Source: Octopus bimaculoides
Lineage: Eukaryota
Length of the DNA stretch: 64,000 bases
Reading direction: 5' to 3'
Assembly: GCF_001194135.2 (NCBI RefSeq)
Contig: NC_069008.1
Coordinates: forward strand, 16,286,354 to 16,350,353
Shown here piece by piece: positions 4,341 to 59,849 of this stretch. Made by a program: the position numbers and the translations under genes. The notes below the pieces were generated by a model. It did no database searches. It was given only the letters and a program-made list of their open reading frames with translations, and was not told the origin of the DNA. The number at the start of each line of letters is the position of its first letter. Positions within the stretch are counted from its first letter, which is position 1.

Positions 4341-4344
4341 TTCT

Positions 4345-4510
4345 TAGAGGTATTTCGTCTGTCTTTACGTTGTGAGTTCAAATTCTGCCGAGGTTGATTT
4401 TGCCTTGCATCCCATCGGAGGTCGATAAATTAAATACCAGTTGCGTGCTGAGGTTGATCAAATCGACTGGCCCCGTCCCCGAAAATCGAATCTTTTGTTC
4501 TTAGAGCAAA
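4345..4510 (+). mobile_element. tRNA-derived SINE remnant (GAGCTGGCAGAA family)
   Basis: B-box-like GAGTTCAAATTC followed by GGTCGATAAATTAA body. Relatives at 9025, 18560 and 45765. Confidence 0.6.
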
Positions 4511-6610: not shown

Positions 6611-7187
6611 ATATATACTCACACTCAATGTGGAGGTGTAGTTATAATTTACAAATCTTTAGATTTCGCCCAATGTTACATGATGTCATTTGTTAATCAA
6701 TAAAGAAATGTTAAAACATTTCCATTTTGATCTCTCCTCTGTATCTAAATGCTGTTTCTTTATTATTTCAGATTAACGGATGACATTGGCACAAAACAAT
6801 TTTTTTAGCATTGGATACATCTGGAATATTTACCATGTTTTTTGAAGATGAAAGGAAAATGTTTTAGAGAACAGAAATAATAACCCAACTGCTATAAATC
6901 TAGGGTTGAATTAATGTGAAATATTTGCTCTGATTGAAGATTAATAGCACCATTTCTCCCTCTCATTATCTGGTGCTTTTGCATTCTAATTAAACTTGAA
7001 TATGTTTGCAAAGCAGTTTACACAAATTTAGATATGAATAACTTGATAGCTGTAGAAATATCTCTACGGAATAAATTATAACAAAAACAAGAAAAAGGAA
7101 ATGCTGTGTTGAGAAAAGTTGGATAAGGGAAAAATTTAATATTTTGAGAAAGTTGAATGGTTGGATCCATTTTTATCTCTTAGAGAA

Positions 7188-9769: not shown

Positions 9770-10680
9770 GACTTTCTTACTCCTGTCAATCTGTCAAACA
9801 CGTACACTTACATAACACATCCAGCGCAGAATACCAGCTTCATTCCTTTCTAGCTTTTGCATGTATTCAGAGTGCATGTCTTACAACCATGTAGAATTGC
9901 TGTCTGTATACATGCATTATACAATCTTACTTTCACTTGGACAGAGAAACCTTTCTTGTAGTCAACACAGATCAAAGGTACCTGAATTTCCTCTATCCTA
10001 TTTTTATTCTAGCTATTCCATTCTTCATACATCTTACCTCACTACTAATTTGGTCTCCTAGGTAGCAGAAGTTATCTACTACCTCTGATGAGCTTCCAGG
10101 GCATTTGAGAAAATCAAATTCCCGAGTCTCTAAAGTTTCTATGGATCCTGTGCATCTTCCACATGTGAAAACTATCTTCTTGTGTAACGTTCCTATTATT
10201 CCTTTCCACCTCTTGTATGTCTGTAGCTTACACGGTGTATACCGTATGAAGCTCCTGCCTACATCTTCTCTACAAATCAAATGGGACTGTCTACCTGAGG
10301 TGATGGGTATGGTCCTATCAGCTTTCTTGCTTACTAGGTCCTTACTTTTTGCCAAGTTAAGCATCTTAAGGCTTTTAAACTCCAGGTTTTGCTTCCACAC
10401 CTGGAATTTCTCTTCTAGTTCTAATATGGAATCTGCTATGAAGGCAAGATCATCAACATTTAGTAGTTTCCAGGGGCTGCTGTTCTTAAATTCCTCTGTT
10501 ATGGCATGAAGGACAATGATGAAAAGGAGGAAACTGAGGACTGAGCCTCGATGAGACCCTATTTGTACACCAAATTCATTGCTGAACTCGTAATTGGTCC
10601 TCACCTTACGGATAGCATCTTTGTACATGGCCTATACAGCTTACATCAACTCATCTATCCCTAGCCTCCTCAGAAGTTGT
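9770..10680 (-). mobile_element. Degenerate RTE-clade reverse transcriptase
   Basis: Translation gives G.HRGSVLSFLLFIIVL, NVDDL (YADD site) and FCYLGD, then RLYNA...LERNEAGILRWMC, with stops and frameshifts. Confidence 0.85.
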
Positions 10681-14377: not shown

Positions 14378-15241
14378 ATGTCAAAAGAATTAGGAAAATC
14401 ACAACATTGGTGTGAAATCTGTGGTAAATCATTCTTTAGAAGTACTGAACTAGTTAAACACATTCGTGTTCATACAGGTGAGAAGCCATTTCACTGTGAT
14501 ACCTGTGGTAAATCATTCTCTCTAAGTCATCACTTAACTGAACATAAACGTATTCACACAGGTGAGCGACCACATCACTGTGATATCTGTGGTAAATCAT
14601 TCTCTGCAAGTAGTACCTTAACTAAACACAAACGTATTCACACAGGAGAGAAACCATATCACTGTGATATCTGTGGCAAGGCATTCACTGAGAATGGTCA
14701 CTTACACAGACACAAACGTTTTCATACAGGAGAAAAGCCATTTCACTGTGTTACCTGTGGTAAATCATTCTCTGAAGGTAATGCCTTAACAACCCACAAA
14801 CGTATTCATACAGGAGAGAGACCGTATTGCTGCAATATCTGTGGTACATCATTTTCTGAATGCGGAGTCTTAGTAAGACACAGACGTATTCACACAGGAG
14901 AGAGACCATATCACTGTGTTATCTGTGGAAAATCATTCTCTGGAATTAATGACCTGACTAGACACAAACGTATTCATACGGGGGAAAAACCATATCACTG
15001 TGACACCTGTGGTAAATCATTCACTGCAAAACAAAACTTAATTAAACATAGACGTATTCATACAGGGGAGAAACCATATCACTGTGACATCTGTGATAAA
15101 TCATTCTCTCAGAGGAATGGCTTAACTAGTCACAAACGTATTCATACAAGAGAAAAACCATATTACTGTGATGTCTGTGGTAAATCATTCTCTCAGAGAA
15201 GTAAATTAACTAGACATGCATCTATCCATGTGAAAGTGTGA
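14378..15241 (+). CDS. C2H2 zinc-finger gene A2, 10 fingers
   Basis: Intact 287-aa ORF, MSKELGKSQHWC...QRSKLTRHASIHVKV*. Confidence 0.95.
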   Translation: MSKELGKSQHWCEICGKSFFRSTELVKHIRVHTGEKPFHCDTCGKSFSLSHHLTEHKRIHTGERPHHCDICGKSFSASSTLTKHKRIHTGEKPYHCDICGKAFTENGHLHRHKRFHTGEKPFHCVTCGKSFSEGNALTTHKRIHTGERPYCCNICGTSFSECGVLVRHRRIHTGERPYHCVICGKSFSGINDLTRHKRIHTGEKPYHCDTCGKSFTAKQNLIKHRRIHTGEKPYHCDICDKSFSQRNGLTSHKRIHTREKPYYCDVCGKSFSQRSKLTRHASIHVKV

Positions 15242-15738: not shown

Positions 15739-16859
15739 ATACAAAAGTGTAACTATATCAATGTCAAAATTCATTGAGTTTCTTAACAACCAACATTTTA
15801 AGATCTTTTTCCCTGTTCGACCCTTAGTTAGTCCTGAGGTCTTAACAGTAATGTGTAAAGCCTTCACTTGAATCATAGTCATCATGGTTCTTTCTTTGAG
15901 GTACTATTTTCTGACCACATTATCTGTTTGTAGCCAGTTTAGTAGCCTCTTGCAACATACAAGGATGTGGGATTCTATCTGCATCCACTTCTGTTCTAAA
16001 CTGGATACAACTACTATGTCAAAATTGCTTCTAAAAATATGTACCTTATGTAACCATAAATAAAAATGTCTTATAGAACTGTAAATGTACACAGAACAGA
16101 TGATGTAGTCTTACTATATAAAGTATGTTGTCAGTGTGTGTGTCCTGTATGCATGGCTAAACCTCTGGATCAGTCTGTACCATACTTGATGTACATGCAT
16201 AATTTGGCCTGGGAAATGGTACCATCTTGATTTATATTTTTATTAAAAATACATAATATTGCTTTATATGTATATTAAAGATTCACGTCTTGAAACCATT
16301 TTGTCATTGTTAACTTCCTGTGTCTGACGTTCTGATGTAGTAACTAAGTAACCAGCTATTTACACACACACACATGTATGTATACATAATTACAATTGTG
16401 ATGATTTCTGATAAAAAAGAATTTCTACAGGTACTTTCAGTTTTTATCTTCTTCTCCAGATTGCTATTTGCCTATCTTTATGTATCGGTTCATTTCTGTA
16501 AAAATTTTCCATTGTCAACAAGTCTGCTTCATATATAAGATGTATTTGTGTGTATGTAAGTAGAATCTACACGGAGATAGGCGCCTCTTTTTCATGTCAA
16601 CAGGTTTGTTTAGAGATATATTAATGTGAGTGTCTGAATGAAAATACATTCAATGCGTAGATAGACGACTTGTTTTTTCAAATGTCAACAGGTGGGTGCC
16701 ATGCAGTTGTACTGGAGTCCAACTGCATGGCACTTTGGAGAAGTGTCTTCAACTGTAGCCCTGGGCCATCTAAAAGCCTTGTGACTGGATTTGGATGGCA
16801 GAATCTTTGAAGAAGTCTGTTGTGTATGTGTGTGAGTATCTCATCATCATTTAAAAACT

Positions 16860-17700
16860 ATGCAGAGTCGGGTGGGAGCGGGTGTAAATCTATATTAGAA
16901 AACATTTGTGTTACAAGCAATTCATACTAATTCTCCAGGAATTATTTATAAGCTGACACGTTTGTAAAGATAAACAATCATGGTTCAGTCTCTTGTCTTA
17001 GCTATCACACTCCGCTGTTTACATATGTGGAACTTATGCTACGTAGAGGCCCATACATTTTCTGCTTACCATTAGAATACTTGTTGGTGACCAGGATCCA
17101 CCCCTGGAATCAATTCGTAGAAATGTGCAACAATATGTGTAACAATAGCGATGCGAATAATTTGTGCTTTCGATTTAAAGTCCAGAAGGGTGAGGAAGTT
17201 CATTGATTGATTTGTTGTTGATTAATAGCCATATCTCCTGTCTTGTAAAATGGGGGACAACCAATTCACGATGTAAAGCTGTGATCAAATGGAATTTTTA
17301 ATCATGAAGCTGATAGAACATTGACCCTGAAGTACGGGTATTACTAAAGCAGAGTGCTCCCGAACACTCTAGCTAGTCGTGAGTGGTCGATCCTACAAAA
17401 AGTGCGCGTGTGCAAATGAATACATGTAATTAATGTTAAAGTTGCGCGTTCGGGACCACTCTGCTTTAGTAGTACCGAAGTATGTAGGTCACCCTGTTTT
17501 ATTCAAAAACATTAACGTTCACCTTAAAACGAGATAATTACTATATATAATATAATGAGATTTCGTTCAACTAATTAGAAACACGCCTAATAGGCAGTTT
17601 CGTTGATAACTCTTCCTTTGTTTGAAGGACATCGGTGGCGTATATTAAAAGTCCCCAACGTAATATATGTCCATGAAGAAACACCTTACATTATATCATT
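16860..17700 (-). pseudogene. Ghost of a B-type gene start and upstream module B
   Basis: Aligns to the B1 start and upstream region: fossil ATG 16923-16925, acceptor 16953, donor 17069, module B 17180-17700. No finger array follows. Confidence 0.7.
17337..17476. mobile_element. 140-bp MITE, GG...CC ends, 8-bp TSD (Merlin-like family 2)
   Basis: 29-bp TIR GGTAYTACTAAAGCAGAGTGSTCCCGAAC. TSD GAAGTACG/GAAGTATG. Empty sites in other module B copies. Confidence 0.85.
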
Positions 17701-17758
17701 GTACATCTTTAATTGTTTCTTACCCGTGGTAAATGCCAAACACATCATCCAGATAAAC

Positions 17759-18019
17759 CAGTGGTTCTCAACCATTGTACACATGACTCTTGGCTATGTC
17801 CACGTATGATTTTGCTGTTAAAGTTTATGTGCAATAAACTGGTTAAACTTCTACAATACACAAACCATTTTAGCAATTTTTTAAAATACAATTTCTAATA
17901 ATATTTAATTATAAAAGCATAAGGGGAATTTTTAAATCATCGATTGGCTGTGAGTCTACACGAGTAAAACAGGAAACGAAAGGGGTCATACGTAAAGGAA
18001 AAAACGTTGAGAGTCACTG
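17759..18019. mobile_element. hAT/Charlie-like MITE
   Basis: CAGTGGTTCTCAAC...GTTGAGAGTCACTG ends. TSD poorly preserved. An internal piece recurs at 46610-46690. Confidence 0.6.
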
Positions 18020-18559
18020 GGCTAAGCAGTAATTTCTTATTAAGAAGGGAGTCTCGACATGGTCACTGAAGCTGCTAAAATAGCAGCCAAATACCTTCTA
18101 CCATCATGTAATATTGAAAGAAGGATTTTGGTCGTATGTCTGGGTACTAAACTGACTGATACAACATAATTACTTGAGCTCTGCTAATTAAAAACACCTA
18201 CAGTTGGCAATGGCGTAAATAATTTGATAATTTTTCCTTCGTTTCAAGATCTCAACATCATTCAATACATTCAGAAACGCCTTTCATTCGGAAGATTTTA
18301 TTCTATTTATACAAACAGGATGAGTGACCACTTTTCGACACTTCCTTCTATCGACATGTTTCTACGTCCAGTTATCCCCACCAACATTCACTAAAACTTT
18401 ACGTCCACGAAAGTCATGGCATTTAATACGTGAATTTAATTTGATGTCTGCAGGGAGTCAACGGAAGTGCAAGCTTGTGTGTTAGAAATATATGTCTGAT
18501 AGATTAATAATAGATCGGTGACTATGAACATAAGTATAGCAATGTTAATCATAATGGTT

Positions 18560-20433: not shown

Positions 20434-21234
20434 ATGTCAAAAGAATTAGGAAAATCACAACATTGTTGTGAAATCTGTGGTACATCATATCCTAGACGTA
20501 GTGAGTTGGTTAAACACATTCGTGTTCATACAGGTGAGAAGCCATTTCACTGTGACATCTGTGGGAGATCATTCACTCAGAACGGTAGCTTAAGTAAACA
20601 CAAACATATCCACACAGGAGAGAAACCATATCACTGTGATATCTGTGGTAAATCATTCTCCGCAAAAGCTAACTTAACCATACACAAACGTGTTCATACA
20701 GGAGAGAAGCCATTTCACTGTGTTATCTGTGGTAAATCATTCTCTGACTGCAGAATCTTAAGAAGACACAAACGTATTCACACAGGAGAGAGACCGTATC
20801 ACTGTGATATCTGTGGCAAGGCATTCTCTGGAATTAATAACTTGACTACACACAAACGTATTCATACAAGGGAAAAACCATATACTTGTGATATCTGTGG
20901 CACATCATTCTCTGATTCCAGAATCTTAAGAAGACACAAACGTATTCACACAGGAGAGAGACCGTATCACTGTGATATCTGTGGTAAATCATTCTCTAGA
21001 ATTAATAACTTGACTACACACAAACGTATTCATACAGGGGAAAAACCATATGCTTGTGATATCTGCGGTAAATCATTCACTGCAAATAGTACCTTAATTC
21101 AACACAAACGTATTCATACAGGAGAGAAGCCATATAACTGTGATATCTGTGGCCTCTCATTCTCTCGAAATAGTGCCTTAACTAAACACAAGCTTATACA
21201 TACAGGAGAGAAACTATATCACTGTGATTTTTGA
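20434..21234 (+). CDS. C2H2 zinc-finger gene A3, 9 fingers, terminal finger deleted
   Basis: 266-aa ORF ends LYHCDF* where the sequence jumps into a downstream fossil also seen at 38630. Confidence 0.88.
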   Translation: MSKELGKSQHCCEICGTSYPRRSELVKHIRVHTGEKPFHCDICGRSFTQNGSLSKHKHIHTGEKPYHCDICGKSFSAKANLTIHKRVHTGEKPFHCVICGKSFSDCRILRRHKRIHTGERPYHCDICGKAFSGINNLTTHKRIHTREKPYTCDICGTSFSDSRILRRHKRIHTGERPYHCDICGKSFSRINNLTTHKRIHTGEKPYACDICGKSFTANSTLIQHKRIHTGEKPYNCDICGLSFSRNSALTKHKLIHTGEKLYHCDF

Positions 21235-25167: not shown

Positions 25168-26990
<1,823 letters not shown>

Positions 26991-27143: not shown

Positions 27144-27782
27144 ATCGGTAAAGAAATTGTTGCTTGTGTCCATGAGTTGAGTGGTGACGAGCAAGCAAAC
27201 CAGCGGAGATTGTGGCTCATTGATTTTTGTTGTCACTTAAAGCGTGCGGAACCCATGCTCCATACTTCTGAACCTTTCCCATCGAGTGAAGCTGCTTCTC
27301 TATGGCAGTGTGGGAGCATTCCATTTTCTCTGCCAGTTCCTTTGTTGTTTGATGATGATTTTCGTGCAAAAGTTGGTTTAATCGCTCTTCATCGAACTCA
27401 ACTGGACGGCCAGAACGAGGTGCGTCTTTGAGGTCAAAGTTTCCATTTTTGAACTTGGCATACCAACCACGAGTGGTTCTTTCAGCTATGGCACCCTCTC
27501 CATACCCAGCAACAAATGTTGCAATCAGCTTTTGTGGCATTAGAACCACAATAATTAAATGCAAAAAAAAAAAAAGGTGTTGAAAATGCTCGTTTTCTTA
27601 ACTTGACATTCCATGTTAATAATCTGAAAATAAACAAAAATTAACTAGAAAACAAAAAAAAAAAAAAAGATTCCAAAATGAAGCAAAAATAGAATTCTTG
27701 AAAAAATAAATTCCAAAATTTAAAAACGCAATAAATTCCAAAATCAAAAAAAACCAGCAGGAACTTTGTTGCCAACTCAATA
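27144..27782 (-). mobile_element. Mariner transposon 5' half (TIR and transposase DNA-binding region)
   Basis: Translation has PRSGRP, WVPHAL and then KNQ*ATISAGLL. TIR TATTGAGTTGGCAACAAAGTTCCTG at 27758-27782. Catalytic part absent. Confidence 0.88.
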
Positions 27783-36563: not shown

Positions 36564-38180
36564 ATGTCTAAAGAATTAGGAAAATCACGACATTGGTGTG
36601 AAATCTGTGGTAAATCATTCTCTAAAAGTAGTGACTTAATTAGACACATTCGTGTTCATACAGGTGAGAAGCCATTTCACTGTGATGCCTGTGGTAAATC
36701 ATTCTCTCAAAACAATACATTAACTAGACACAAACGTATTCATACAGGAGAGAAGCCATATCACTGTGAGATCTGTGGTAAATCATTCTCTCAAAACAGT
36801 GACTTAACTAAACACATACGTATTCATACAGGAGAGAAGCCATTTAAATGTAATATCTGTGACAAGACATTCAGTGAGAATAAACAGTTAAGCAGACACA
36901 AGCTTATTCATACAGGAGAGAATCCATTTCACTGTATTATCTGTGGTAAATCATTCTCTGTAGGTAGTGAATTAACAACTCACAAATGTATTCATACAGG
37001 AGAGAAGCCATATCGTTGCGATATCTGTGGCAAAGCATTCTCTAGCAGTAGAGTCTTAAAAGGACACAGACGTATTCATCCAGGAGAGAGCCCATATCAG
37101 TGTGATATCTGTGGTAAATCATTCTCTGGAATTAGTGACTTGACTATACACAAACGTATTCATACAGGGGAAAAACCATATAGTTGTGATATATGTGGCA
37201 AAGCGTTCTCTAGCAGTAGAGTCATAAAGAAACACAAACGTATTCACACAGGGGAGAGGCCATATCACTGTGATATCTGTGGTAAATCATTCTCTGGAAT
37301 TAGTAACTTGACTACACACAAACGTATTCATACAGGGGAGAAGCCATATAAATGTGATATCTGTGGTAAATCATTCTCTGAGAATTCGATCTTAACTAAA
37401 CACAAACATATACATACAGGACATAGACCATATCGCTGTGATGTTTGTGGTAAATCATTCTCTGGATTTAGTGACTTGACTACACACAAACGTATTCATG
37501 CAGGGGATAAACCATATAATTGTGATATATGTGGCAAAGCATTCTTTGACAGAGTCATAAGAAAACACAAACGTATTCACACAGGAGAGAGACCATATGA
37601 CTGTGATATCTGTGGTAAATCATTCTCTCGAAATAGTCACTTAACTACACACAAACGTATTCATACGGGGGAAAAGCCATACAATTGTGATATCTGTTGT
37701 AAATCATTCTCTGACAACTCAACCTTAACTAAACACAAACGTATTCACACAGGAGAGAGACCATATCACTGTGATGTCTGTGGTAAATCATTCTCTCAAA
37801 TTAGTGACTTGACTAGACACAAACGTATTCATACGGGGGAAAAGCCATATCATTGTGATATCTGTGGTAAAGTATTCTCTGACAGCAGAGTCTTAAGAAA
37901 ACATAGGCGTATTCATACAGGGGAAAGACCATATCACTGTGATATCTGTGGTAAATCATTCTCTGGAAGTAGTGACCTGATGACACACAAACGTACTCAT
38001 ACGGGAGAAAAACCATATCACTGTGATATCTGTGGAAAATCTTTCTCTGAAAACTCTAGCTTTACCACACACAAACGTATTCATACAGGAGAGAAACCAT
38101 ATCACTGTGATTTCTGTGGTAAATCGTTCTCTCAGAGAAGTAACTTAAATACACATGCATCTCTCCATGGAAAAGTGTGA
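36564..38180 (+). CDS. C2H2 zinc-finger gene A5, 19 fingers
   Basis: Intact 538-aa ORF, MSKELGKSRHWC...HASLHGKV*. Shares finger blocks with A4. Confidence 0.95.
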   Translation: MSKELGKSRHWCEICGKSFSKSSDLIRHIRVHTGEKPFHCDACGKSFSQNNTLTRHKRIHTGEKPYHCEICGKSFSQNSDLTKHIRIHTGEKPFKCNICDKTFSENKQLSRHKLIHTGENPFHCIICGKSFSVGSELTTHKCIHTGEKPYRCDICGKAFSSSRVLKGHRRIHPGESPYQCDICGKSFSGISDLTIHKRIHTGEKPYSCDICGKAFSSSRVIKKHKRIHTGERPYHCDICGKSFSGISNLTTHKRIHTGEKPYKCDICGKSFSENSILTKHKHIHTGHRPYRCDVCGKSFSGFSDLTTHKRIHAGDKPYNCDICGKAFFDRVIRKHKRIHTGERPYDCDICGKSFSRNSHLTTHKRIHTGEKPYNCDICCKSFSDNSTLTKHKRIHTGERPYHCDVCGKSFSQISDLTRHKRIHTGEKPYHCDICGKVFSDSRVLRKHRRIHTGERPYHCDICGKSFSGSSDLMTHKRTHTGEKPYHCDICGKSFSENSSFTTHKRIHTGEKPYHCDFCGKSFSQRSNLNTHASLHGKV

Positions 38181-39528: not shown

Positions 39529-39716
39529 GGAGGCACGATGGCCTAGTGGTTAGGGCAGCAGACTCATGGTCGTGGGACCGCGGTTTCAATTCCCAGACAA
39601 ATTGTGTTTATTGTGCAAAAACAACTTAAGCTCCACAGGGCTCCAGCAGGGGATGGTGGCGAACCCTGCTGTACTCTTTCACCACAACTTTTTCTCACTG
39701 TTTCTGTCGTACCTGT
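39529..39716 (+). mobile_element. Partial tRNA-derived SINE (GTGGAGGCGCAATGG family)
   Basis: Diverged head and first half of the body. Confidence 0.75.
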
Positions 39717-40509
39717 ATGTTAATTGAAGAGTAATAGCTGTCAATATCTATTTGCATGAATTCCTACTTTTAAATATAATTCTATTAAACCAATGTTACT
39801 TCAGAAGTACTAGACCAGAGTTGTAATCTATTTCTTTAAGAACTTGTATATACTTATCCAAAATAGCTTTACTAAGTTTACTCAGGTTTCATTTACCTGG
39901 GCAAATCAATCTTACTTTAGGGTAACTGTTAAAATTTTCTTTCAGATACTTTGAAATAATCCTTAGCCTTTTGGTCTTTTAGAAATAAAAAGTTCAATTG
40001 TCATCCAATTTGTAGTTTTCCATAACTTTTTAAACAATGCACATGTCTGAGTCTGTCGTAGGTTAGCCAACACATTAAAATGTAACTCCCTTTTGGGAAA
40101 ATTCTTCCCTGAAAAAATACCTAATTGATCAGTTTCAATATGAGAATTTAAATTCAATTAATTTCATTTTAATTTCTGTAATAGAATTGGATACAGAAAC
40201 AGCTGTAGGACTGGAATTTCATTACATGAATTCGAATGAAGTGATATCTGCATGTTAATGTCTCCATTTCCTTCCACACACATATATAATCATTATCATT
40301 TAATATCCATGTTCCATGATCTGATATGTCCAAGGTTTGCATCATACTTCAGTGTATGTTTTTGTATGTATTCTATGGCTGGATGCTCTCCCTAATGTTA
40401 ACCACTTTATGGCATGGATTGGGTACTGTTTTTTTTTTTTTTCTCCTGCATTTCTCCTATACTATTGAAGTCACCGTGCAGCTCGCAGAAATAAAAGCTC
40501 TGCAGAGTT

Positions 40510-41060
40510 GAGTGAAGGACAGTTGTAAATCTATATTAAATCTCCAGGAATTGTTTGTAAGCTGAGAAATGTTTTTAAAGATAAATAATTATGATTCAGT
40601 TTCTTGTCTTAGATGTCATAGACTTCTGTTCACACGTGTGGAACATTTGCCACGTATAGCCCAATACATTTTCTACATATCATTAGAATACTTGTTGGTG
40701 GCCGGGTCTTCACCTGAACTCAATTAATGGAAGCATGCTAGAATATGTGTAACAATAGCGATGCGAATAATTTGTGCTTTCTATTTAAAGTCCAGAAGGG
40801 TGAGGAAAGTTTATTGATTGATTTGTTGTTGATTACAAGCCATTTCCCCTGTCCTGTAAAATATGGAACAACCAATTAACGATGTAAAGCTGTGATCAAA
40901 TGGAATATGTAATTAGGAAGGTGATGGAACACCGACCCTGAAATACGAAGGTTGCCCTGTCTAATTCACAAACATTAATGTTCACCTTAACAAAAGATAA
41001 TTACTATATATAATTAGATTTAGTTCAACTAATTAGAAACGCACCTAATAGGTGGTTTCA
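40510..41060 (-). pseudogene. Ghost of a B-type gene upstream region
   Basis: Collinear with 16880-17600. Donor site lost, acceptor GAGTTCAG at 40714 retained. Confidence 0.65.
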
Positions 41061-41097
41061 AATGAAATAAGTGTGTATCAAATGAAATTAAAATCCT

Positions 41098-41445
41098 GGA
41101 GTGGCTGTGTGGAAAGTAGCTTGCATACCAACCCCATGGTTCCGGGTTCATTCCCACTGCGTGGTACCTTGGGCAAGTGTCTTCTACTATAGGCTCGGGC
41201 CGACCAAAGCCTTGTGAGTGGATTTGGTAGACAGAAACTGAAAGAAGCCTGTCGTATATATGTGTGTATATATATATATATATAGATACGACGGGCTTCT
41301 TTCAGTTTCCATCTACCAAATCCACTCACAAGGCTTTGGTCGGCCCGAGGCTATAGTAGAAGACACTTGCCCAAGATGCCAAGCAGTGGGACTGAACCCG
41401 GGACCATGTGGTTGGTAAGGAAGCTACTTACCACACAGCCACTCC
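41098..41445. mobile_element. Tail-to-tail inverted pair of SINEs joined by a (TA)n tract
   Basis: 41098-41256 is the near reverse complement of 41287-41445. Confidence 0.9.
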
Positions 41446-41715
41446 TACGCCTATATATATCATATGTAATATGATATAGAATAAGTCCTGGGGTCGATTT
41501 GCTCGACTAAAAGGCGGTGCCCCAGCATGGCCGCAGCCAAATGACTAAGACAAGTAAAAGAGTAGAAAAAGAGTATGTAATACGGAACCAGTGCCAACGT
41601 TATATTGCTTTAATCAAAATGAAAAGAAAAATTACATGGGTCTTAGTACTATGACCTTGTAAAATTTGATTTGATTTGGTCGAACCATTTGAGAACACAT
41701 AAGAAAATAGACAAT

Positions 41716-42828
41716 ATGCTCCGTTGGATGTGTAATGTCAATGTGAATACCCGTCAGAGTGTAAGTATCTTGAGAGAAAAGCTGAACATTAGAAGCATCA
41801 GTTGTGGTGTGCAAGAGAGACGATTGCGCTGGTATGGACATGTGGTGAGAATGGATGAGGATAGCTGCGTGAAAAAGTGCCACACCCTAACAGTTGAGGG
41901 AACCCGTGGAAGAGGTAGGCCCAGGAAGACCTGGGCTGAGGTGGTGAGGCAAGACCTTCGAACATTGGGCCTCACCGAGGTGATGACTACTNNNNNNNNN
42001 NNNNNNNNNNNNNNNNNNNNNNNNNNNNNNNNNNNNNNNNNNNNNNNNNNNNNNNNNNNNNNNNNNNNNNNNNNNNNNNNNNNNNNNNNNNNNNNNNNNN
42101 NNNNNNNNNNNNNNNNNNNNNNNNNNNNNNNNNNNNNNNNNNNNNNNNNNNNNNNNNNNNNNNNNNNNNNNNNNNNNNNNNNNNNNNNNNNNNNNNNNNN
42201 NNNNNNNNNNNNNNNNNNNNNNNNNNNNNNNNNNNNNNNNNNNNNNNNNNNNNNNNNNNNNNNNNNNNNNNNNNNNNNNNNNNNNNNNNNNNNNNNNNNN
42301 NNNNNNNNNNNNNNNNNNNNNNNNNNNNNNNNNNNNNNNNNNNNNNNNNNNNNNNNNNNNNNNNNNNNNNNNNNNNNNNNNNNNNNNNNNNNNNNNNNNN
42401 NNNNNNNNNNNNNNNNNNNNNNNNNNNNNNNNNNNNNNNNNNNNNNNNNNNNNNNNNNNNNNNNNNNNNNNNNNNNNNNNNNNNNNNNNNNNNNNNNNNN
42501 NNNNNNNNNNNNNNNNNNNNNNNNNNNNNNNNNNNNNNNNNNNNNNNNNNNNNNNNNNNNNNNNNNNNNNTGCCAGTGCCCCTGGACTGGCTTGTGCGGG
42601 TGGCACATAAAAGACACCATTTCGAGCGTGGCCGTTTTTGTGCGGGTGACACGTAAAAGCACCCACTACACTCTCTGAGTGGTTGGCGTTAGGAAGGGCA
42701 TCCAGCTGTAGAAACTCTGCCAAATTAGATTGGAGCCTGGTGTTGCCATCCGGTTTCACCAGTCCTCAGTCAAATCGTCCAACCTATGCTAGCATGGAAA
42801 GCGGACGTTAAACGATGATGATGATATA
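41716..42828 (+). mobile_element. 5'-truncated RTE LINE (RT C-terminus, gap, 3' UTR, (GAT)n tail)
   Basis: LRWMC...ERRLRWYGHVVRM...RGRGRPRKTW is a typical RTE ORF end. Tail at 42813-42825. Confidence 0.9.
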
Positions 42829-44576: not shown

Positions 44577-45281
44577 TCATAGTGATGTGGTCTCTCTCCT
44601 GTGTGAACATGTCTGTCTCAAGTGACTATTTCCAGTGAATGCCTTGACACAAAGATCACAATTATATGGTCTTTCTCCTGTGTGAATACGTTTGTGCCTT
44701 TTTAAGTGACTGCTGTCAGTGAATGCCTTGCCACAGGTATCACAGTGATATCGTTTCTCTCCTGTATGTATACATCTGTGTTTCGTCAAATTACTACTGT
44801 TAGAGAATGATTTACCACAGATATCACAATTATATGGTTTTTCTCCAGTATGGGTACGTTTGTGTTTAATCAAGTCACCAATTCCAGTGAATGATTTACC
44901 ACACACATCACAGTGAAATGGCTTTTCTCCAGTATGAATATATTTGTGTCTAGTTAAGTTAACTTTTGCAATGAATGATTTACCACAGATATCACAATTA
45001 TATGGTTTTTCCTCTGTATGAATACGTTTGTGTTGAATTAAGGTACTGTTTACAGAGAATGATTTATCACAGATATCACAGTGATACGGCTTCTCTCCTG
45101 TATGAATACGTTTATGTTTAATTAAGTCATTGCTTTGAGAGAACGATTTACCACAGATATCACAATGAAATGGCTTCTCACCTGTATGAACACGAATGTG
45201 TCTAATTAACTCACTACTTGTAGAGAATGATTTACCACAGATTTCACAACAATGTTGTGATTTTCCTAATTCGTTTGACAT
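44577..45281 (-). CDS. C2H2 zinc-finger gene A6 (inverted), 7 intact fingers, frameshift in the 8th
   Basis: ATG at 45281 ([12 protein letters not shown]). Frame breaks at HLRQTCSH. Confidence 0.82.
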
Positions 45282-46431
45282 TTCTCTAAGGGATACAAAG
45301 AAACCCAACCATTTAAGCTTCTAACAGTATTAAATTTCCCCCTTATCTTTGTTCTCTCACCACAGCATATAATTTCCTTTTTCTTGTTATAGTTTATTCC
45401 TTAGAAATACATCTACTGCTATCAATTGTGAGGTTATCGATATCTAAAATTCTGCAGACCCCTTTACAAATATATATTCAAGTTTAATTAGAATGTAAAA
45501 GCACCAGGTAATGAGAGGGAAAAATGTTACTATGAATCTCTTGTCAGAACAAATATTTCATAACAATTCAAACATAGATTTATAGCAGTTGGGTCATTAT
45601 ATCTCTTCTCTAAATCATTTTCCTTTTGTTTAAAAAAAAACATGGTAAATATTCCAGATGTATCCAATGAACAATAGTTTTTCTGTGCCAATGACATCTG
45701 AAATAATAAAGAAACTGTATAAGTTATAGAGGAGAGATCAAAATAACGAAAGTGTTTCAGCATTTCTAAATTCTCTTCTACTCTAGGTATAAGGGCCGAA
45801 ATTTTTTGGGGAGAGGGCCAGTCGATTAGATCAACCCCAGTAGACAACTGTTACTTAATTTACCAACTGTAAAATGTGTGGTTACTCTAATAGCTGCATA
45901 AACAAAGCGAGCATTCGTCAAGGCAGTTGGTTCGAAAACAGTCATCTCACTTTCTTCAATATCATCCTTCTATCATATTGCTGGGCCCACGACTTCTCTC
46001 CCAAAGACATTTCTCATAAGGTCCACTGCAACAAGAATACTTGTGCAATTCATTGGTGTAATTTCAACTGTGAATTTATTTTAGGGACGTAAAATAGGAA
46101 ATTATCCCGTGTTGTCTTTAGATCTATCCTTTGGTGAAACTTAGTCTACTTAGGAACATTCTGCTCAACATGGCTCACTGTAGCGTAGAGTTGTGTGCTC
46201 TGGAGTAAAGCAATCTGAATTAGATATGACCAGAGAAGCTAAAGAGAGGTGGGTCGGAAGCACGGAAGGCCTCAATCCCTCCGGACCCACAAAGTTTAAA
46301 GCTGAAAACCTGGTCGTCTTCAGAGACAGGAAGGGGGAACCAAATACTCAATACACGGTATAAGTATTCCCGGATTTCTTCAAGCCCGATTCTGCACGTA
46401 CGATTAACCGATAGATAGGTGTGTATATCTT

Positions 46432-48728: not shown

Positions 48729-50273
48729 TCATGTTTTGTAATTAAAAGTCTTCTTTCCTCGAGAGTGGATTTCTTTATGTCTTTTTAAATGACTATTTCT
48801 GTTAAACGATTTCCCACAAACTTCACAATGATATGGCTTTTCTCCAGTGTGGCTAAGTTTGTGGACAATTAGACTAGAATTAGCACAGAAAGATTTCCCA
48901 CATGTCTCACAGTGATAAGGTTTTTCTGTGTGTATTCGTTTGTGAGTAGTCAAATCTCTATTGGACGCAAAACACTTGCCACACACTTCACAACTGAAAG
49001 GTCTTTCTCCAGTGTGCGTCCTTTTGTGTCTGTTTAAATCGCTGTTATTAATAAAAGATTTCTCACACATTTCACAGTGGAAAGGTTTTTCTCCAGAATG
49101 TATCAGCTTGTGCTTTGTTAAATTACTATTGGAGGCAAAGGATTTCCCACACATCTCACAATAATATGGCTTTTCTCCAGTGTGACTACGAATGTGTAAA
49201 ATGAGATAAGAGTTATTTATGTAAGACTTGCCACATATTTCACAGTGAAACAGTTTTTCGCCAGTGTGTAATATTTTATGTGTTTTTAATTGACTATTAG
49301 TAGTAAATGATTTCTCACAAATATCACAGTGGAAAGGTTTTTCTCCACTATGACTACGTATGTGTATAACAAGAGAATAGTTATTTATGTAAAATTTACC
49401 ACATACTTCACAGTGAAATGGCTTTTCTCCAGTATGACTTACTTTATGAGTTTTTAAGTGACTGTTAGTAATAAAAGATTTCCCACATATTTCACAGTGG
49501 AAAGGTTTATCTCCAGTGTGTATTCGTTTGTGTCTATTTACGTAACTATTATCAACAAAAGATTTCCCACATATTTCACAACGATAGGGTTTTTCTCCAG
49601 TGTGACTACGTTTGTGGATAACAAGATGAGAATTATTAAGAAACGATTTCCCGCATGTTTCACAATTAAACAGTTTCTCTTTGATATGCTTTCTTTTGTG
49701 TGCTGCTAAATCACTGTTATCAACAAAACACTTTTCACATAGTTCGCAATAAAACGGTTTTTCTCCACTGTGCATTCTTCTGTGTTTTGTTAGCTTGCTG
49801 TTATAGACAAACGATTTGCCGCAGATTTCACAATGAAAAGGTTTCTCACCAGTGTGAATTCTTCTGTGAACTGCAAGGTTGGAATTTTCAGAGAAGGACT
49901 TCCCGCATATTTCACAACTGTAGGGTTTTTCCCCTGTGTGGATTCTCATATGAACGACAAGATTAGAATTATCAGAGAATGATTTTCCACATATTTCACA
50001 ATGGAAAGGTTTCTCTCCAGTGTGTATTCTTGTATGTTTTGTTAATTTACTATTAGAAACAAAATATTTCCCACATATTTTACAATGGAAATATTTTTCC
50101 TTAGTGTGTATTTCTTTATGTTTGAAGACTTCATGTTCTGAAGAGAATGTCTTCACACAAATCTCACAGCAGTATTCAGGAACATTTTTCTCTAGAGCTT
50201 TCTTATCTCTAACTGTATCTATATTGTTAATAACATTTGTGTTTGAAGAGTCCAATTGATTAACCTTCTCCAT
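48729..50273 (-). CDS. C2H2 zinc-finger gene B1, 17 fingers
   Basis: Intact 514-aa ORF. One linker is shortened (HTEKPY). Confidence 0.95.
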   Translation of the reverse strand: MEKVNQLDSSNTNVINNIDTVRDKKALEKNVPEYCCEICVKTFSSEHEVFKHKEIHTKEKYFHCKICGKYFVSNSKLTKHTRIHTGEKPFHCEICGKSFSDNSNLVVHMRIHTGEKPYSCEICGKSFSENSNLAVHRRIHTGEKPFHCEICGKSFVYNSKLTKHRRMHSGEKPFYCELCEKCFVDNSDLAAHKRKHIKEKLFNCETCGKSFLNNSHLVIHKRSHTGEKPYRCEICGKSFVDNSYVNRHKRIHTGDKPFHCEICGKSFITNSHLKTHKVSHTGEKPFHCEVCGKFYINNYSLVIHIRSHSGEKPFHCDICEKSFTTNSQLKTHKILHTGEKLFHCEICGKSYINNSYLILHIRSHTGEKPYYCEMCGKSFASNSNLTKHKLIHSGEKPFHCEMCEKSFINNSDLNRHKRTHTGERPFSCEVCGKCFASNRDLTTHKRIHTEKPYHCETCGKSFCANSSLIVHKLSHTGEKPYHCEVCGKSFNRNSHLKRHKEIHSRGKKTFNYKT

Positions 50274-50291
50274 ATCAATTCTTGAACAATT

Positions 50292-50410
50292 CTTAAAGCT
50301 GACAAATTTTTGTGAGTTAATCTAGCATAGTTCAGTTTCTTGTCTTAGATACCACAGTCCTCTGTTTACATGTGAGGAACAGATGTAATGTAGATATATT
50401 TTCTACTCAC
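50292..50410 (-). other. Putative ~118-nt 5' UTR intron of B-type genes
   Basis: GTRAGT donor, GATTAAYTCAC branch-like motif and CTTT(T)AAG acceptor 18-19 nt before the ATG in B1, B2 (52503-52622) and B3 (59681-59797). Confidence 0.55.
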
Positions 50411-50789
50411 CAATAAAATGTTTTATTGCTGACTGGGCCATTTCCAAGTGGTTCACTGGGCCATTTCCAAGTAGTTCACACAATAGAAAATATAGACATC
50501 GTTAAATTATGTTATGTAGACTAAGGAATATACATCCATTAAAGGAATGACTGTAGTGTTTCGGTGAAATCTGAGAGATGCTGTAATGAAACGACCATGT
50601 AGCACTACTCAAAAGTATGAAAATATATGAATGTCTAACAGCGATGGCGAACCAAGAAAATAAGTGTGTGCGTATATAACATGTACTCGATAAGTAAGTG
50701 TATATATGCATACACCGGTATAAGTACTGTCCCAATAAATGAGGATTGCTTCCTAGGAATAACCGAAAAATATATAACAATGTAATAAA

Positions 50790-51140
50790 TGTTTTCAGTT
50801 TGAAAGATGAGAAGGGAAGCGGGATGAGGAAAGTTCATTGATTGATTTGTTGCTGATTAAAAGCCATTTCCACTAAACAACAAACTAACGATGTAAAGTT
50901 GTGATCAAACGAATCATTGAATCACGAAGGTGATCGAACAGCAATCCTGAAACATGTAGATCGCCATATCTTATCCACAAACTTTAACGTTCACCTTAAC
51001 ACGAGATAATTGCTATACATGATATATAATTAGATTCACACAATTAATTAGAAACACAACAAGGAGACGGTGTCGTTGATAATTTTTCCCTCATTTGAAT
51101 GACACCGGTGATATACTTTAAAAGGTTCTGACGTAATATA
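50790..51140 (-). promoter_or_regulatory. Module B upstream of B1 (candidate promoter or first exon)
   Basis: Conserved non-coding block upstream of all three B genes, always in the same relative orientation. Confidence 0.45.
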
Positions 51141-52159: not shown

Positions 52160-52500
52160 TAAGGTGTTTTTAAATGTATTGAATTATGTTGGGAACTTTT
52201 AATATATGTCACCGGTGTAATTCAAAAGAAGGGAAAATTATCAATGACACCGTCCACTGTGTTTCTTATTAGTTGAATCTAATCTTACTAATGCACAATA
52301 TAGTAATTATCTCGCGTTAAAGCGAACATTAATGTTTGTGTATAAAATTGGGTGAACTATATTTGATCACAGCTTTCGTTAATTGGTCGTTCCCTATTTT
52401 ACGGGACAGAGGAAATGGCTTTTAATCAACAACAAATCAATCAATGAACTTTTCTCATAATTCTTCACTTTTCATTTGGACTTTATATCAAATATTCTAC
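52160..52500 (+). promoter_or_regulatory. Module B upstream of B2
   Basis: Reverse-complement match to 50790-51140 and 17180-17700. Confidence 0.45.
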
Positions 52501-52641
52501 TGGTAAGTAGATAATATATCCACATTACATCCGTTCCACTCATGTAAATAGAAGTTTGTGACATCTGAGACAAGGAACTGAACCATAATAGATTAATTCA
52601 CAGGCATTTCTCAGCTTTTAAGCAGTTCGTCGAGAATTAAT

Positions 52642-54018
52642 ATGGAGAACGTTGATCACTTGGACACGTTTAACACAACTGTTGTTAACAATGTAGATAC
52701 AGTTAGAGAGACAGACGGAGGTGAGAATGTTGTAGAGAAAAATGTTGCTGAATATTCCTGTGAGATTTGTAGGAAGACATTCTCTTCAGAAGAGGAGGTC
52801 ATCACACACAAAAAAATACACAAGAAAGAAAAACAGTTCCATTGCGAAATATGTGGGAAATATTTTGCCTCAAACTGTTATTTAATAAGTCACAGAAGAA
52901 TCCACACTGGAGAGAAACCATACCATTGTGAGATATGTGGGAAATCTTTTACTCAGAATTCCAATCTTTTAGTTCACAAAAAAATACATACTGGGGAAAA
53001 AGCGTTCCATTGTAAATCGTGTGGGAAATCTTTTGCTCAGAATGGTCATCTTATCAACCACATACGCAGTCACACAGGAGAGAAAGCTTTCCACTGTGAA
53101 ATTTGTGGGAAATCCTTCACTCAGAATGGTCATCGGGTTAAACACATTCGTAGTCACACTGGAGAAAAACCATTTAGTTGTGACATTTGTGGGAAATCTT
53201 TCTCGGATAATTCTAGTGTTGTCGTTCACAAACGTAGCCACACTGGAGAGAAACCCTATCATTGTGAAATATGCGGGAAATCGTTTGTTTCTCATGGTAG
53301 TTTAACAAAACACAAAATAATACACACGGGAAAGAAAGTATTTCACTGTGAAATATGTGGTAAATCTTTTAATCAGAACTCACACCTTGTTAGTCACAAA
53401 CGTAGTCACACTGGCGAAAAAGCCTTCCATTGTAATATATGTGGAAAATCTTTCACTCAAAATTCTCGTCTTGTTATCCACACACGTAGCCACACTGGAG
53501 AGAAACCTTTCCACTGTGAAATTTGTGGTAAATCATTCTGTGACCATTCTAGTCTTGTAGTTCACAAACGTAGCCACACTGGAGAAAAACCATATTGCTG
53601 TGATACATGCGGCAAGACATTTGTTTCAAACAGTATTTTAACAAAACACAAAATGATCCACACTGGAGAAAAGCGGTTTCCTTGTGAAATATGTGGAAAA
53701 TCTTTCATTAATAATCCAAGCCTTCTTAGTCACAAACGTATTCATACAGGAGAAAAAGCCTTTCACTGTAAAATATGTGGGAGATCTTTCACTCAGAATT
53801 CTCATCTTGCTATCCATACTCGTAGTCACACTGGAGAAAAACCTTTCCATTGTGAGACATGTGGTAAATCATTCTCTGATAAATCCTGTCTTATAATTCA
53901 CAAACGAAGCCATACAGGAGAAAAACCATTTCACTGTGAACTATGCAAGAAATCTTTTGTCTCTAACAGTAGTTTAACAAAACACAAACAAATACACACA
54001 AGAGAAAAACTTACCTAG
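52642..54018 (+). CDS. C2H2 zinc-finger gene B2, 15 fingers
   Basis: Intact 458-aa ORF. Confidence 0.95.
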   Translation: MENVDHLDTFNTTVVNNVDTVRETDGGENVVEKNVAEYSCEICRKTFSSEEEVITHKKIHKKEKQFHCEICGKYFASNCYLISHRRIHTGEKPYHCEICGKSFTQNSNLLVHKKIHTGEKAFHCKSCGKSFAQNGHLINHIRSHTGEKAFHCEICGKSFTQNGHRVKHIRSHTGEKPFSCDICGKSFSDNSSVVVHKRSHTGEKPYHCEICGKSFVSHGSLTKHKIIHTGKKVFHCEICGKSFNQNSHLVSHKRSHTGEKAFHCNICGKSFTQNSRLVIHTRSHTGEKPFHCEICGKSFCDHSSLVVHKRSHTGEKPYCCDTCGKTFVSNSILTKHKMIHTGEKRFPCEICGKSFINNPSLLSHKRIHTGEKAFHCKICGRSFTQNSHLAIHTRSHTGEKPFHCETCGKSFSDKSCLIIHKRSHTGEKPFHCELCKKSFVSNSSLTKHKQIHTREKLT

Positions 54019-58342: not shown

Positions 58343-59662
58343 TCACAGTGGAAGGGTTTTCCTCCAGCATATATTCTTTTGGTGAGCTGCAAGATTGGAA
58401 TTTTGTGAGAAAAATTTCCCACACATCTCACAGTGGAATGGTTTTTCTCCAGTGTGGCTACGTTTGTGGATAACAAGATGGGAATTATTGACAAAAGATA
58501 AACCACATGTTTCGCAGTGGAATGGTTTTTCTCCAGCATGTAGTTTTTTGTGAACAACCAGATTAGAACTTTGAGAAAAAGTTCTCCCACACATGTCACA
58601 GTGATAAGGTTTTTCCCCAGTGTGTAATCTTTTGTGAGCCACAAGATGGGCGTTTCTAGTGAAAGATTTCCTACATATTTCACAGCGAAATGATTTTTCT
58701 CCAGTGTGCATTGTTTCATGTCTTTGCAAATTAGTTTTAGACACAAAAGATTTCTTACACATTTCACACTGGAATGGTTTTTCTCCAGTGTGACTACGTT
58801 CGTGAACAACAAGATGGGAATTTTTAATAAAAGATTTCCCACATATTTCACAAGGATATGGCTTTTCTCCAGTATGTATTCTCTTGTGTATTGTTAGATT
58901 ACTATTTGAGAGAAACGATTTCTCACAGACATCACAGTGGAACGGTTTTTCGCCAGTATGGCCACGTTTATGTATAGAAAGGTGTGAATTAGAAATGAAA
59001 GCCTTGCCACAAATCTGACAATGATAAGGTTTTTCCCCAGTATGGTTACGCTTGTGGACAACAAGGTGTGAATGGTTAAAGAAAGATAATCCACATATTA
59101 AACAGTGATATGGTTTTTCTCCTGTATGCGTTCTTTTATGAACTACAAGATTAGATTTCTGACTGAAAGATTTCCCACATGTTTCACAATGAAATGGTTT
59201 TTCTCCAGTGTGACTTCGAACATGGTTAACAAGATGAGTATTATTCACAAAAGTTAAACCACAAATTTCACAGTGGAAAGGTTTCATTCCAGTATGTATT
59301 TTCTTATGAACTGCAAGATTGGAATTTTGAGCAAATGTTTTCCCACATATCTCACAATAAAACGGTTTCTCTCTCGTGTGTATTCTTTGATGACTTGTTA
59401 GATAACTGTTATGAGCAAAATATTTACCACATATTTTGCAATGAAACGGTTTCTCCTTACTGTGTATTTCTTTGTGTTTAAAGACTTCGTCTTCGGAAGA
59501 AAAGGTCTTCCTACAAACATTACATTTATATTCAGTAATATTTCCCTGTAACGATCTTTCTTTAGTAAACGTTTCACTATCAGCTCCGTCTGTCTCTCTA
59601 AAAGTATCTATATTGTTACACACCTTGGTGTTAGAAATGTCCAAGAGATCAACGTTCTCCAT
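58343..59662 (-). CDS. C2H2 zinc-finger gene B3, 13 intact fingers, frameshift in the 14th
   Basis: ATG at 59662 (MENVDLLD) aligned with B1 and B2. A 1-nt insertion near 58381 shifts the frame. Confidence 0.88.
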   Translation of the reverse strand: MENVDLLDISNTKVCNNIDTFRETDGADSETFTKERSLQGNITEYKCNVCRKTFSSEDEVFKHKEIHSKEKPFHCKICGKYFAHNSYLTSHQRIHTREKPFYCEICGKTFAQNSNLAVHKKIHTGMKPFHCEICGLTFVNNTHLVNHVRSHTGEKPFHCETCGKSFSQKSNLVVHKRTHTGEKPYHCLICGLSFFNHSHLVVHKRNHTGEKPYHCQICGKAFISNSHLSIHKRGHTGEKPFHCDVCEKSFLSNSNLTIHKRIHTGEKPYPCEICGKSFIKNSHLVVHERSHTGEKPFQCEMCKKSFVSKTNLQRHETMHTGEKSFRCEICRKSFTRNAHLVAHKRLHTGEKPYHCDMCGRTFSQSSNLVVHKKLHAGEKPFHCETCGLSFVNNSHLVIHKRSHTGEKPFHCEMCGKFFSQNSNLAAHQKNICWRKTLPL

Positions 59663-59849
59663 ATTAATTATTGTACAACTCTTAAAAGTTGACAAACGTC
59701 CGTGAGTTAATCTATTATTGTTTACTTCCTGATTTTATTCTCCATAGACTTCCGATTACATGTTTGGAAAACATGCCACACAGATATATCAACTTACCCC
59801 AAGAATGCTTACCGTTGCACAAAGCTTATTGTAAACAAAAACAAAAACG

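Follow-up and report, generated by a model that had tools for sequence, protein, structure and literature searches.

An undescribed N-terminal leader and an atypical first finger in a subfamily of Octopus poly-C2H2 zinc-finger proteins

A region of 64,000 nucleotides of the Octopus bimaculoides genome (contig NC_069008.1, positions 16,286,354 to 16,350,353 of the forward strand; the window, by which we mean the whole stretch analyzed) was found to hold a cluster of Krüppel-type C2H2 zinc-finger genes, broken by assembly gaps (5,021 N) and containing 11 finger arrays. Three genes, B1, B2, and B3, constitute subfamily B, the proteins of which carry a leader ahead of the finger array, and most of the other arrays are of a subfamily A type. 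The leader is a real, undescribed, and Octopus-restricted feature of this poly-C2H2 subfamily, and not a demonstrated new effector domain, whereas the atypical first finger that follows it (finger 1) is the best-supported functional element. On balance, we favor the reading that the family-specific leader is mainly inherited and that the functional element is finger 1.

All three subfamily B genes are complete open reading frames (ORFs), of which B1 and B2 are arranged head-to-head with their start codons 2368 bp apart, as follows.

48729-50273, minus strand: B1, complete ORF, 514 aa, 17 C2H2 fingers
52642-54018, plus strand: B2, complete ORF, 458 aa, about 15 fingers
58343-59662, minus strand: B3, complete ORF from the conserved ATG, 439 aa, 13 regular fingers and a truncated last one

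A regular expression for the 28-residue unit (C-x2-C-x12-H-x3-H) recovered 17, 14, and 13 fingers in B1, B2, and B3, respectively, to which one degenerate finger in B2 and the truncated last finger in B3 are to be added (about 15 and 14). The arrays have a period of 84 nt, and the Pfam families zf-C2H2 and zf-H2C2_2 matched the three proteins at E = 1e-72 to 1e-122. With their tandem fingers and TGEKP-type linkers (mostly TGEKP itself or a one-residue variant, the linkers after finger 1 being the consistent exception), B1-B3 belong to the Krüppel-type poly-C2H2 proteins. The N-terminal regions of the three proteins can be divided into a 23-aa motif, a spacer, and finger 1.

50205-50273, minus strand: B1 motif (codons 1-23), MEKVNQLDSSNTNVINNIDTVRD
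50175-50204, minus strand: B1 spacer (residues 24-33), shortened by an in-frame deletion when compared with B3 and with the homologues from Octopus
50091-50174, minus strand: B1 finger 1, YCCEICVKTFSSEHEVFKHKEIH, helix SEHEVFK, with the linker TKEKY, which lacks glycine
52642-52710, plus strand: B2 motif, MENVDHLDTFNTTVVNNVDTVRE
52711-52836, plus strand: B2 spacer (residues 24-37) and finger 1 (residues 38-65), helix SEEEVIT, linker KKEKQ
59594-59662, minus strand: B3 motif, MENVDLLDISNTKVCNNIDTFRE
59447-59593, minus strand: B3 spacer (residues 24-44) and finger 1 (residues 45-72), helix SEDEVFK, linker SKEKP

The three motifs share the consensus ME.V..LD..NT.V.NN[IV]DT.R[ED], in which M1, E2, V4, L7, D8, N11, T12, V14, N16, N17, D19, T20, and R22 are invariant, and they are acidic, with a net charge of -2 to -4 and 3-6 acidic residues. 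A preliminary description of this DNA had reported this consensus together with an acidic first finger; the peptides proved to be exactly as quoted there and the finger helices were confirmed. The span given there, 50090-50273, does cover B1 residues 1-61 on the minus strand, but starts one base too far, the exact range being 50091-50273. The spacers are 10, 14, and 21 residues long in B1, B2, and B3, respectively, and that of B3, with ETFTKERSLQGNITE, is the longest and near-ancestral form. Since the longer spacers have E.FTK.RSL..NI.EY in common, the short spacers of B1 and B2 are in-frame deletions. Leader-versus-leader tblastn within the window gave E = 4e-10 to 6e-7, and the likeness of the B1-B3 leaders thus reflects homology and not chance.

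The ATG of the motif is likely the true start codon, as judged from its surroundings. In B1-B3, position -3 is A or G and position +4 is G, and the nearest in-frame stops lie 16-25 codons upstream. The distance from an acceptor-like site to the ATG is 25, 27, and 26 nt in B1, B2, and B3, respectively, and a stretch of such unequal length between paralogs cannot be conserved coding sequence. The mechanically listed ORF of B3, which starts at a TTG, extends 11 codons 5' of the ATG, and these codons are not conserved coding sequence. Conserved upstream coding sequence in the window was excluded by the in-frame stops and by the length differences that are not multiples of three. A coding exon 5' of the motif, as implied by the database model XP_052833736.1 with its 106 additional residues, was likewise rejected, because a 473-aa ORF beginning at the ME.V start runs through that locus without interruption.

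Finger 1 differs from the rest of the array in both its helix and its linker. The helices (positions -1 to +6) have a net charge of -1 in B1, -3 in B2, and -2 in B3, and their pattern S-E-[HED]-E-V-x-x is constant among the paralogues; the other helices of the B1-B3 arrays follow the pattern x-N-S-x-L-x-x and are variable at the base-reading positions. The linkers after finger 1 are devoid of glycine in all three proteins, versus TGEKP-like linkers nearly everywhere else. The preliminary description had argued that an acidic helix disfavors DNA binding. This argument turned out to be weak, because finger 1 of Zif268, which binds DNA, has the helix RSDELTR in the Protein Data Bank (PDB), with Asp at +2 and Glu at +3. 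The linker without glycine would be a better sign than the acidic helix that finger 1 is uncoupled from the array. In an O. sinensis gene (L002:20822-22237), a tandem duplication within the array has copied the acidic finger along with its linker without glycine and the finger that follows (PSEHEVSAHKQIHSREKSF then PSELEVSAHKQIHSREKSF), so that this type of finger can also follow a canonical TG.KP linker.

The leader also occurs outside the three paralogs, copies being found in O. bimaculoides, O. sinensis, and a Logan contig. In a profile search of 1.84 billion representatives, four proteins matched the whole leader among the best 150, which were dominated by multi-finger proteins whose finger matches add up: XP_052833736.1 (locus L003) and A0A0L8GTW0 of O. 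bimaculoides, XP_029652431.1 of O. sinensis, and a UniParc entry with two tandem copies. The leader-bearing homologues are referred to below as P0002, P0061 (O. bimaculoides), P0124 (O. sinensis), P0143 (O. bimaculoides), and P0152, the last being a degenerate leader copy on the Logan contig. At the DNA level, uninterrupted ORFs with the leader were located at L003:12161 (473 aa, O. bimaculoides) and L002:20822 (471 aa, O. sinensis), and the O. sinensis copy at L002:10001 ends after 84 codons. Altogether, the leader was recovered in about 10 genes and is kept in at least five intact ones (the two named Octopus species and the window); in the wider family of eight sequences, only M1, E2, V4, and N16 of the motif are invariant. 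A leader-only hidden Markov model scan of all fetched proteins revealed no further carriers. Exact look-ups with the proteins encoded in the window gave no match. A word-indexed protein search with N-terminal alignments returned only an unrelated finger protein (P0001) and the Logan fragment P0152, missing the octopus proteins contained in the query, and the same search with full-length B3 gave mostly vertebrate zinc-finger proteins (ZNFs) and no cephalopod among its best 120 matches; a search that fails to return cephalopod proteins is unfit to measure the distribution of the family. The subfamily B leader thus appears to be known only from Octopus so far, in searches that give no measure outside this genus.

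The public gene models of subfamily B members look unreliable. The XP_052833736.1 model (368 aa over 11 kb, L003:10001-21333, including the 106 extra N-terminal residues) overlies the 473-aa ORF at L003:12161-13582, and the XP_029652431.1 model (L002:10001-13092) spans 2.3 kb past the ORF that stops at codon 84. The neighboring O. sinensis gene (L002:20822-22237) is annotated from an internal Met at 20930, which skips the motif, and its frame is open from 20822.

Selection on the parts of the leader was assessed by the Nei-Gojobori method on seven DNA copies (the window, the two named Octopus species, and the Logan contig), as the ratio of nonsynonymous to synonymous rates (dN/dS), with a Fisher test of whether the proportion of nonsynonymous differences (pN) lies below that of synonymous ones (pS). 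The median dN/dS was 0.81-0.84 for the spacer, 0.47-0.52 for the motif, 0.23-0.24 for finger 1, and 0.10-0.23 for finger 2, and the mean pairwise amino-acid identity was 0.67 for finger 1, 0.55 for the motif, and 0.43 for the spacer. The constraint on finger 1 was significant (p ≤ 0.002), and the spacer appears to evolve about neutrally (p = 0.29-0.85). The preliminary description had proposed comparing dN/dS between the motif and the spacer; the direction was as predicted, with a lower value in the motif, but the constraint on the motif was weak, failing to reach significance in close pairs (p = 0.23 over three independent ones; range 0.23-0.56) and borderline in deep pairs of intact genes (p = 0.026-0.26).

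As a yardstick for the motif, the non-coding block directly upstream of the ATG was employed.

50274-50420, minus strand: conserved non-coding block 5' of the B1 ATG, the comparator for motif conservation, with GGTGAGT about 135 nt and TTTGTCAG / TTTAAG about 20-27 nt from the ATG
52489-52641, plus strand: B2 counterpart of the block
59663-59789, minus strand: B3 counterpart of the block
16883-17078, minus strand: w17k, a relic B-type 5' end whose upstream block is 63-77% identical to those of B1-B3

The nucleotide identity between the window paralogs was 79-85% in the motif versus 71-79% in the adjacent block (Fisher p = 0.07-0.19 per pair), and the motif is not significantly better conserved than its flanking non-coding DNA within the window, at variance with what the effector proposal of the preliminary description entailed. 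The w17k relic, in which the DNA of the motif is still recognizable, contains frame-breaking indels and an early stop and has no finger array behind it. Considering that such dead 5' relics and the upstream block have stayed alike, the substitution-level similarity of the motif in the window needs no selection, recency being enough.

AlphaFold2 (AF2), run on the eight-sequence alignment with the B3 leader, gave a predicted local distance difference test (pLDDT) score below 50 at residues 1-3 and 6-37 and no secondary structure before residue 45, and modeled finger 1 of B3 as a standard beta-beta-alpha finger with pLDDT 74-84. The leader residues 1-43 are thus predicted to form a disordered tail without a KRAB- or ZAD-like fold. 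Pfam reported only zinc-finger families on B1-B3 and nothing on residues 1-33/44, and the sequence matches in the PDB are limited to the finger, beginning at about residue 27-45. Among the best 25 families per protein (28-36 being matched in all), KRAB (PF01352) had no match at E ≤ 1, zf-AD (PF07776) was absent, the leaders holding 0-1 Cys, and neither SCAN (PF02023) nor BTB (PF00651) was present; the 33-44 non-finger residues of B1-B3 are in any case too short for SCAN or BTB. No description of the leader was found in Pfam, the PDB, or the literature searched, and the earlier claim that the leader and the distinctive, conserved finger 1 are undescribed thus held. Among the short motifs compared by eye only (EH1, WRPW, PxDLS, PxVxL, SIM, and a classical nuclear export signal), none fits the peptide. 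An amphipathic helix or short coiled coil, suggested by the 3-4 spacing of hydrophobic positions (4, 7, 11, 14, 18, and 21), seems unlikely on account of the poor helix formers, the prolines in two members, and the lack of a helix in the AF2 model. An origin of the motif from an antisense finger was rejected: weak tblastn matches (0.06) were obtained, but the best 54-nt ungapped DNA matches (30-33) equaled the maximum of shuffled sequences (30-33).

In the reading that we favor on balance, B1-B3 are paralogues of a poly-C2H2 subfamily recovered only from Octopus here, and their 13-17 Krüppel-type fingers with TGEKP linkers would be expected, from the known fold, to bind DNA in a sequence-specific manner. 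The leader of 33-48 residues before the array is inherited and comprises three parts of differing behavior, namely, an acidic, Asn/Thr/Val-rich peptide of 23 residues, which carries the start codon and is predicted to be disordered and under at most weak purifying selection; a deletion-prone spacer, which evolves about neutrally; and finger 1, which is predicted to be structurally intact and is strongly constrained, with its constant helix and glycine-less linker. Finger 1 probably serves as an accessory finger that is not mechanically coupled to the array that reads bases, and we infer that its contact, be it with a protein partner or, without specificity, with nucleic acid, would be constant, in place of the reading of a variable triplet. 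The peptide would mainly be an inherited translated leader without a discrete effector function, any role beyond this being modulatory at most, such as that of an acidic tail.

Several points weigh against this reading. The leader is the sole non-finger part of the B1-B3 proteins, so that any cofactor recruitment by a non-finger surface must take place there. The motif dN/dS of about 0.5 is below the value of about 0.8 in the spacer, and deletions have repeatedly occurred in the spacer and mostly spared the motif, which lost three codons in the degenerate L001 copy only and one codon in the O. sinensis genes. In one deep pair (O. bimaculoides L003 versus O. sinensis L002b), the constraint on the motif reached p = 0.026, and the 23 codons provide low statistical power, so that a real constraint could be missed. 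The finger 1 helix (Ser at -1, Glu at +3, and Lys at +6), together with conserved Lys/Arg at backbone positions, is compatible with DNA contact, and the accessory role proposed for this finger from its sequence is itself only probable. Furthermore, short disordered acidic peptides can be real effectors, a precedent being FiNZ, the 28-aa acidic-rich N-terminal sequence of cyprinid ZNFs, which exemplifies such a peptide as a possible effector (PMC10547256).

Most of these points are shared by the proposal that the 23-aa peptide, alone or combined with finger 1, constitutes a true effector module. As a short linear motif, it would be a docking site for a co-repressor or co-activator and would be brought to target DNA by the array, comparable to the delivery of TRIM28 by KRAB and to what is suspected of FiNZ. 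This proposal also gains from the retention of the leader, the only non-finger sequence of these proteins, in at least five intact genes, from its acidity and predicted disorder, which resemble those of the short acidic FiNZ (PMC10547256), and from the hydrophobic positions 4, 7, 14, 18, and 21, which are largely kept in the family. However, it has to face the lack of significant constraint on the motif in close pairs and of any significant excess over the flanking non-coding DNA in the window, the mere four invariant residues across eight sequences, the prolines and the deletion within the motif of two O. sinensis members, the annotation of one of the O. sinensis members from an internal Met that leaves the motif out, and the absence of both a predicted folded structure and a match to known effector families. 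Taken together, we consider an effector peptide unlikely.

An origin from decayed fingers, which is compatible with the favored reading, was regarded as similarly doubtful. The leader would then be what remains of one or two N-terminal fingers, the present finger 1 having once been finger 2 or 3, and the spacer might, with the same low probability, carry a relic of a TGEKP-like linker and a remnant of a beta-hairpin. Compared with the start of a family finger, such spacer relics were seen in the same alignment columns of P0143 (YNGEKPLCDETF), P0124 (DGEKQLL), and P0061 (DERPLHIETVIKQ); a profile of 41 B-family fingers scored the leaders of P0143, P0061, P0002, and B1 above shuffled sequences (p = 0.009-0.022); and hhalign of the leader against a finger pair gave p = 0.013 in a sensible register, although with a probability of merely 3.3%. 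On the other side, the leaders of B3, P0124, and P0152 were no better than shuffles (p = 0.18-0.65), hmmsearch with the finger profile found nothing in the leaders, and comparison with the finger consensus at the DNA level gave p = 0.2-0.9 for the motif, the B3 spacer alone reaching p = 0.03-0.05.

More ambitious versions of the effector proposal fared worse. That the peptide, perhaps together with the acidic finger 1, is an Octopus-lineage equivalent of KRAB or FiNZ, recruiting a chromatin cofactor to the targets chosen by the array, seems rather improbable. The KRAB- or ZAD-like role of the leader, which the preliminary description had put forward by analogy, is only weakly favored by the evolutionary evidence, namely, by a modest difference in dN/dS, and would be of about the same low probability as the two proposals just weighed or slightly below it; AF2 found no structure in the peptide, and the analogy also fails by size and cysteine count.

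It is quite unlikely that the conservation of the motif is in part a nucleotide-level phenomenon, whereby a conserved 5' unit (promoter, 5' untranslated region (5'UTR), a possible short 5'UTR intron, and start context), copied and kept as a block, would extend about 70 nt into the ORF. Over the 135-150 nt 5' of the ATG, the identity is 69-79% among B1-B3 and 67-75% to the O. bimaculoides gene; this stretch is non-coding, every frame being interrupted by indels of 1-2 nt. The same block was observed in L003:12011-12160 and L001:484-633. Conserved within it are a donor-like GGTAAGT/GGTGAGT about 135 nt 5' of the ATG, a TTAAC branch-point-like site, and acceptor-like TTTGTCAG, TTTAAG, or TTTTAAG 19-27 nt 5' of the ATG, and the block may represent a short 5'UTR intron. 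In addition, the pS of the motif in the window paralogues (0.11-0.35) was lower than that of fingers 1-3 (0.31-0.71). The motif, however, has only about 13 synonymous sites, which makes its pS very noisy, and in deeper pairs this value rises to 0.5-0.75, like that of the fingers; moreover, the gene-less relics w17k and w40k keep the upstream block about as well as live genes do (63-77%), indicating that the block is young and not constrained.

A cis-acting electrostatic DNA mimic, in which the leader and finger 1, both acidic, would occupy the basic array in competition with non-specific DNA and thereby sharpen specificity, as acidic tails of other DNA-binding proteins such as HMGB1 do, suits the net charges of the motif (-2 to -4) and the finger 1 helix (-1 to -3), the disordered leader directly beside the array, and the weak sequence constraint, composition mattering more than exact sequence for such a role, but it is equally improbable considering the short peptide with its 3-6 acidic residues, the lack of direct evidence, and the other net-negative fingers in the same proteins (F3, F4, and F6 of B1).

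The window also holds subfamily A genes, relics, and transposable element (TE)-like fragments.

7161-8303, 14378-15241, 20434-21234, 25168-26688, and 36564-38180, plus strand: subfamily A genes, 8-11 residues ahead of the first finger
44577-45308, minus strand: subfamily A gene, 8-11 residues ahead of the first finger

With just about 8-11 residues before their fingers, the A-type genes reveal that octopus-type ZNFs exist without the leader. About 10 codons 5' of the Met are conserved in frame in subfamily A as well (F.SLRE), so that the true start or a splice acceptor may sit just upstream. Three relics of the B-type 5' flank, at 16716-18095, 39535-41441, and 3940-4717 (all minus strand), were detected, with about 750 bp homologous to the upstream regions of B1-B3, no finger array, and a broken motif frame. 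Each of them is found downstream of an oppositely oriented A-type gene, at a distance of 2-3 kb, as if one dead B gene had been carried along in tandem duplications of the A unit. The 17-kb and 40-kb relics are 83% identical across 416 bp. The upstream region of B1 contains an insertion of about 380 bp (50427-50806) that is absent in B2, B3, and the relics and holds a 23-nt unit repeated 2.1 times at 50432-50479. Within the B2 array, a 336-nt higher-order repeat of four fingers (53059-54008; 2.8 copies, 79% matches) points to a recent internal block duplication of fingers. The TE-like ORF fragments recognized by eye between the ZNF genes (9993-10628, minus strand; 41671-42678, plus strand; 27217-27564, minus strand) comprise a reverse-transcriptase-like stretch, a retroelement tail with RRLRWYGHVVRMDED, and a mariner-type transposase N-terminus with GRPVEFDEERLNQLL. 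Rfam gave no match in the window.

Coleoid cephalopods have more than a thousand C2H2 zinc-finger genes, and 1,453 C2H2 zinc-finger sequences have been used for O. bimaculoides (PMC12513265). In the cephalopod ZNF literature searched, no effector domain of these proteins is described. A family-specific N-terminal module would open a way into what cephalopod ZNFs do after binding DNA, as KRAB did for tetrapods and FiNZ maybe for cyprinids, and the peptide, if it were an effector, would be a new and very short one in animals whose ZNF expansion is among the largest beyond the vertebrates. The present results narrow the candidate, the strong constraint residing in the atypical finger 1 and not in the peptide. 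They also illustrate that conservation among recent tandem paralogues needs flanking non-coding DNA as a yardstick before a functional reading.

Like the KRAB-ZNFs, subfamily B has an acid-rich non-finger region N-terminal to a Krüppel-type array and clustered, fast-duplicating genes. KRAB is a box of about 75 residues that is encoded on separate exons and binds TRIM28, whereas the leader described here comprises 23 residues (33-48 with the spacer), is predicted to be disordered, and does not match PF01352. The ZAD-ZNFs of insects likewise carry a lineage-specific N-terminal module ahead of their C2H2 arrays. ZAD, however, is a zinc-coordinating dimerization fold of about 75-90 residues with four invariant zinc-binding cysteines, and the leader has 0-1 cysteine, no Pfam match, and no predicted fold. 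The SNAG domain of Snail, Gfi, and Insm is comparable in size and place, as an effector peptide that spans about 20 residues, starts a C2H2 protein, and does not fold by itself. Nevertheless, SNAG is basic (MPRSFLVKK...) and mimics the histone H3 tail for LSD1, and the acidic ME.V..LD start shares no sequence resemblance with it and is not a SNAG sequence.

For finger 1, the CGx-Phi C2H2 fingers of Diptera, which are atypical N-terminal first fingers with a conserved upstream extension, provide a precedent for a first finger that makes protein-protein contact rather than reading DNA (PMC12774644). These are single fingers located at least 100 residues from the array, with a Cys-Gly-x-hydrophobic strand directly upstream (PMC12774644), whereas finger 1 of subfamily B lies 5 residues from finger 2 and has neither a CG motif nor an extra strand in the AF2 model, and does not belong to this class.

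FiNZ differs from the leader in several respects. It is described as highly conserved in about 700 zebrafish genes and many cyprinids (PMC10547256), in contrast to about 10 genes, a dN/dS of about 0.5, and four invariant residues for the motif here; it occupies its own exon 5' of the finger exon (PMC10547256), whereas the motif, spacer, and fingers form a single ORF in B1-B3, L003:12161, and L002:20822; its start, deduced for the first seven residues only from a published morpholino (MAFIKEE...), is unlike ME.V..LD; and it is restricted to cyprinid fish, whereas the homologues of the leader are from O. bimaculoides and O. sinensis. Despite such disparity, FiNZ is the closest concept to the subfamily B leader. 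In each case, a short, acidic-rich N-terminus (28 aa versus 23 aa) that resembles no known domain stands at the front of a lineage-specific poly-C2H2 family with tandemly clustered genes, and the mechanism is unproven in both.

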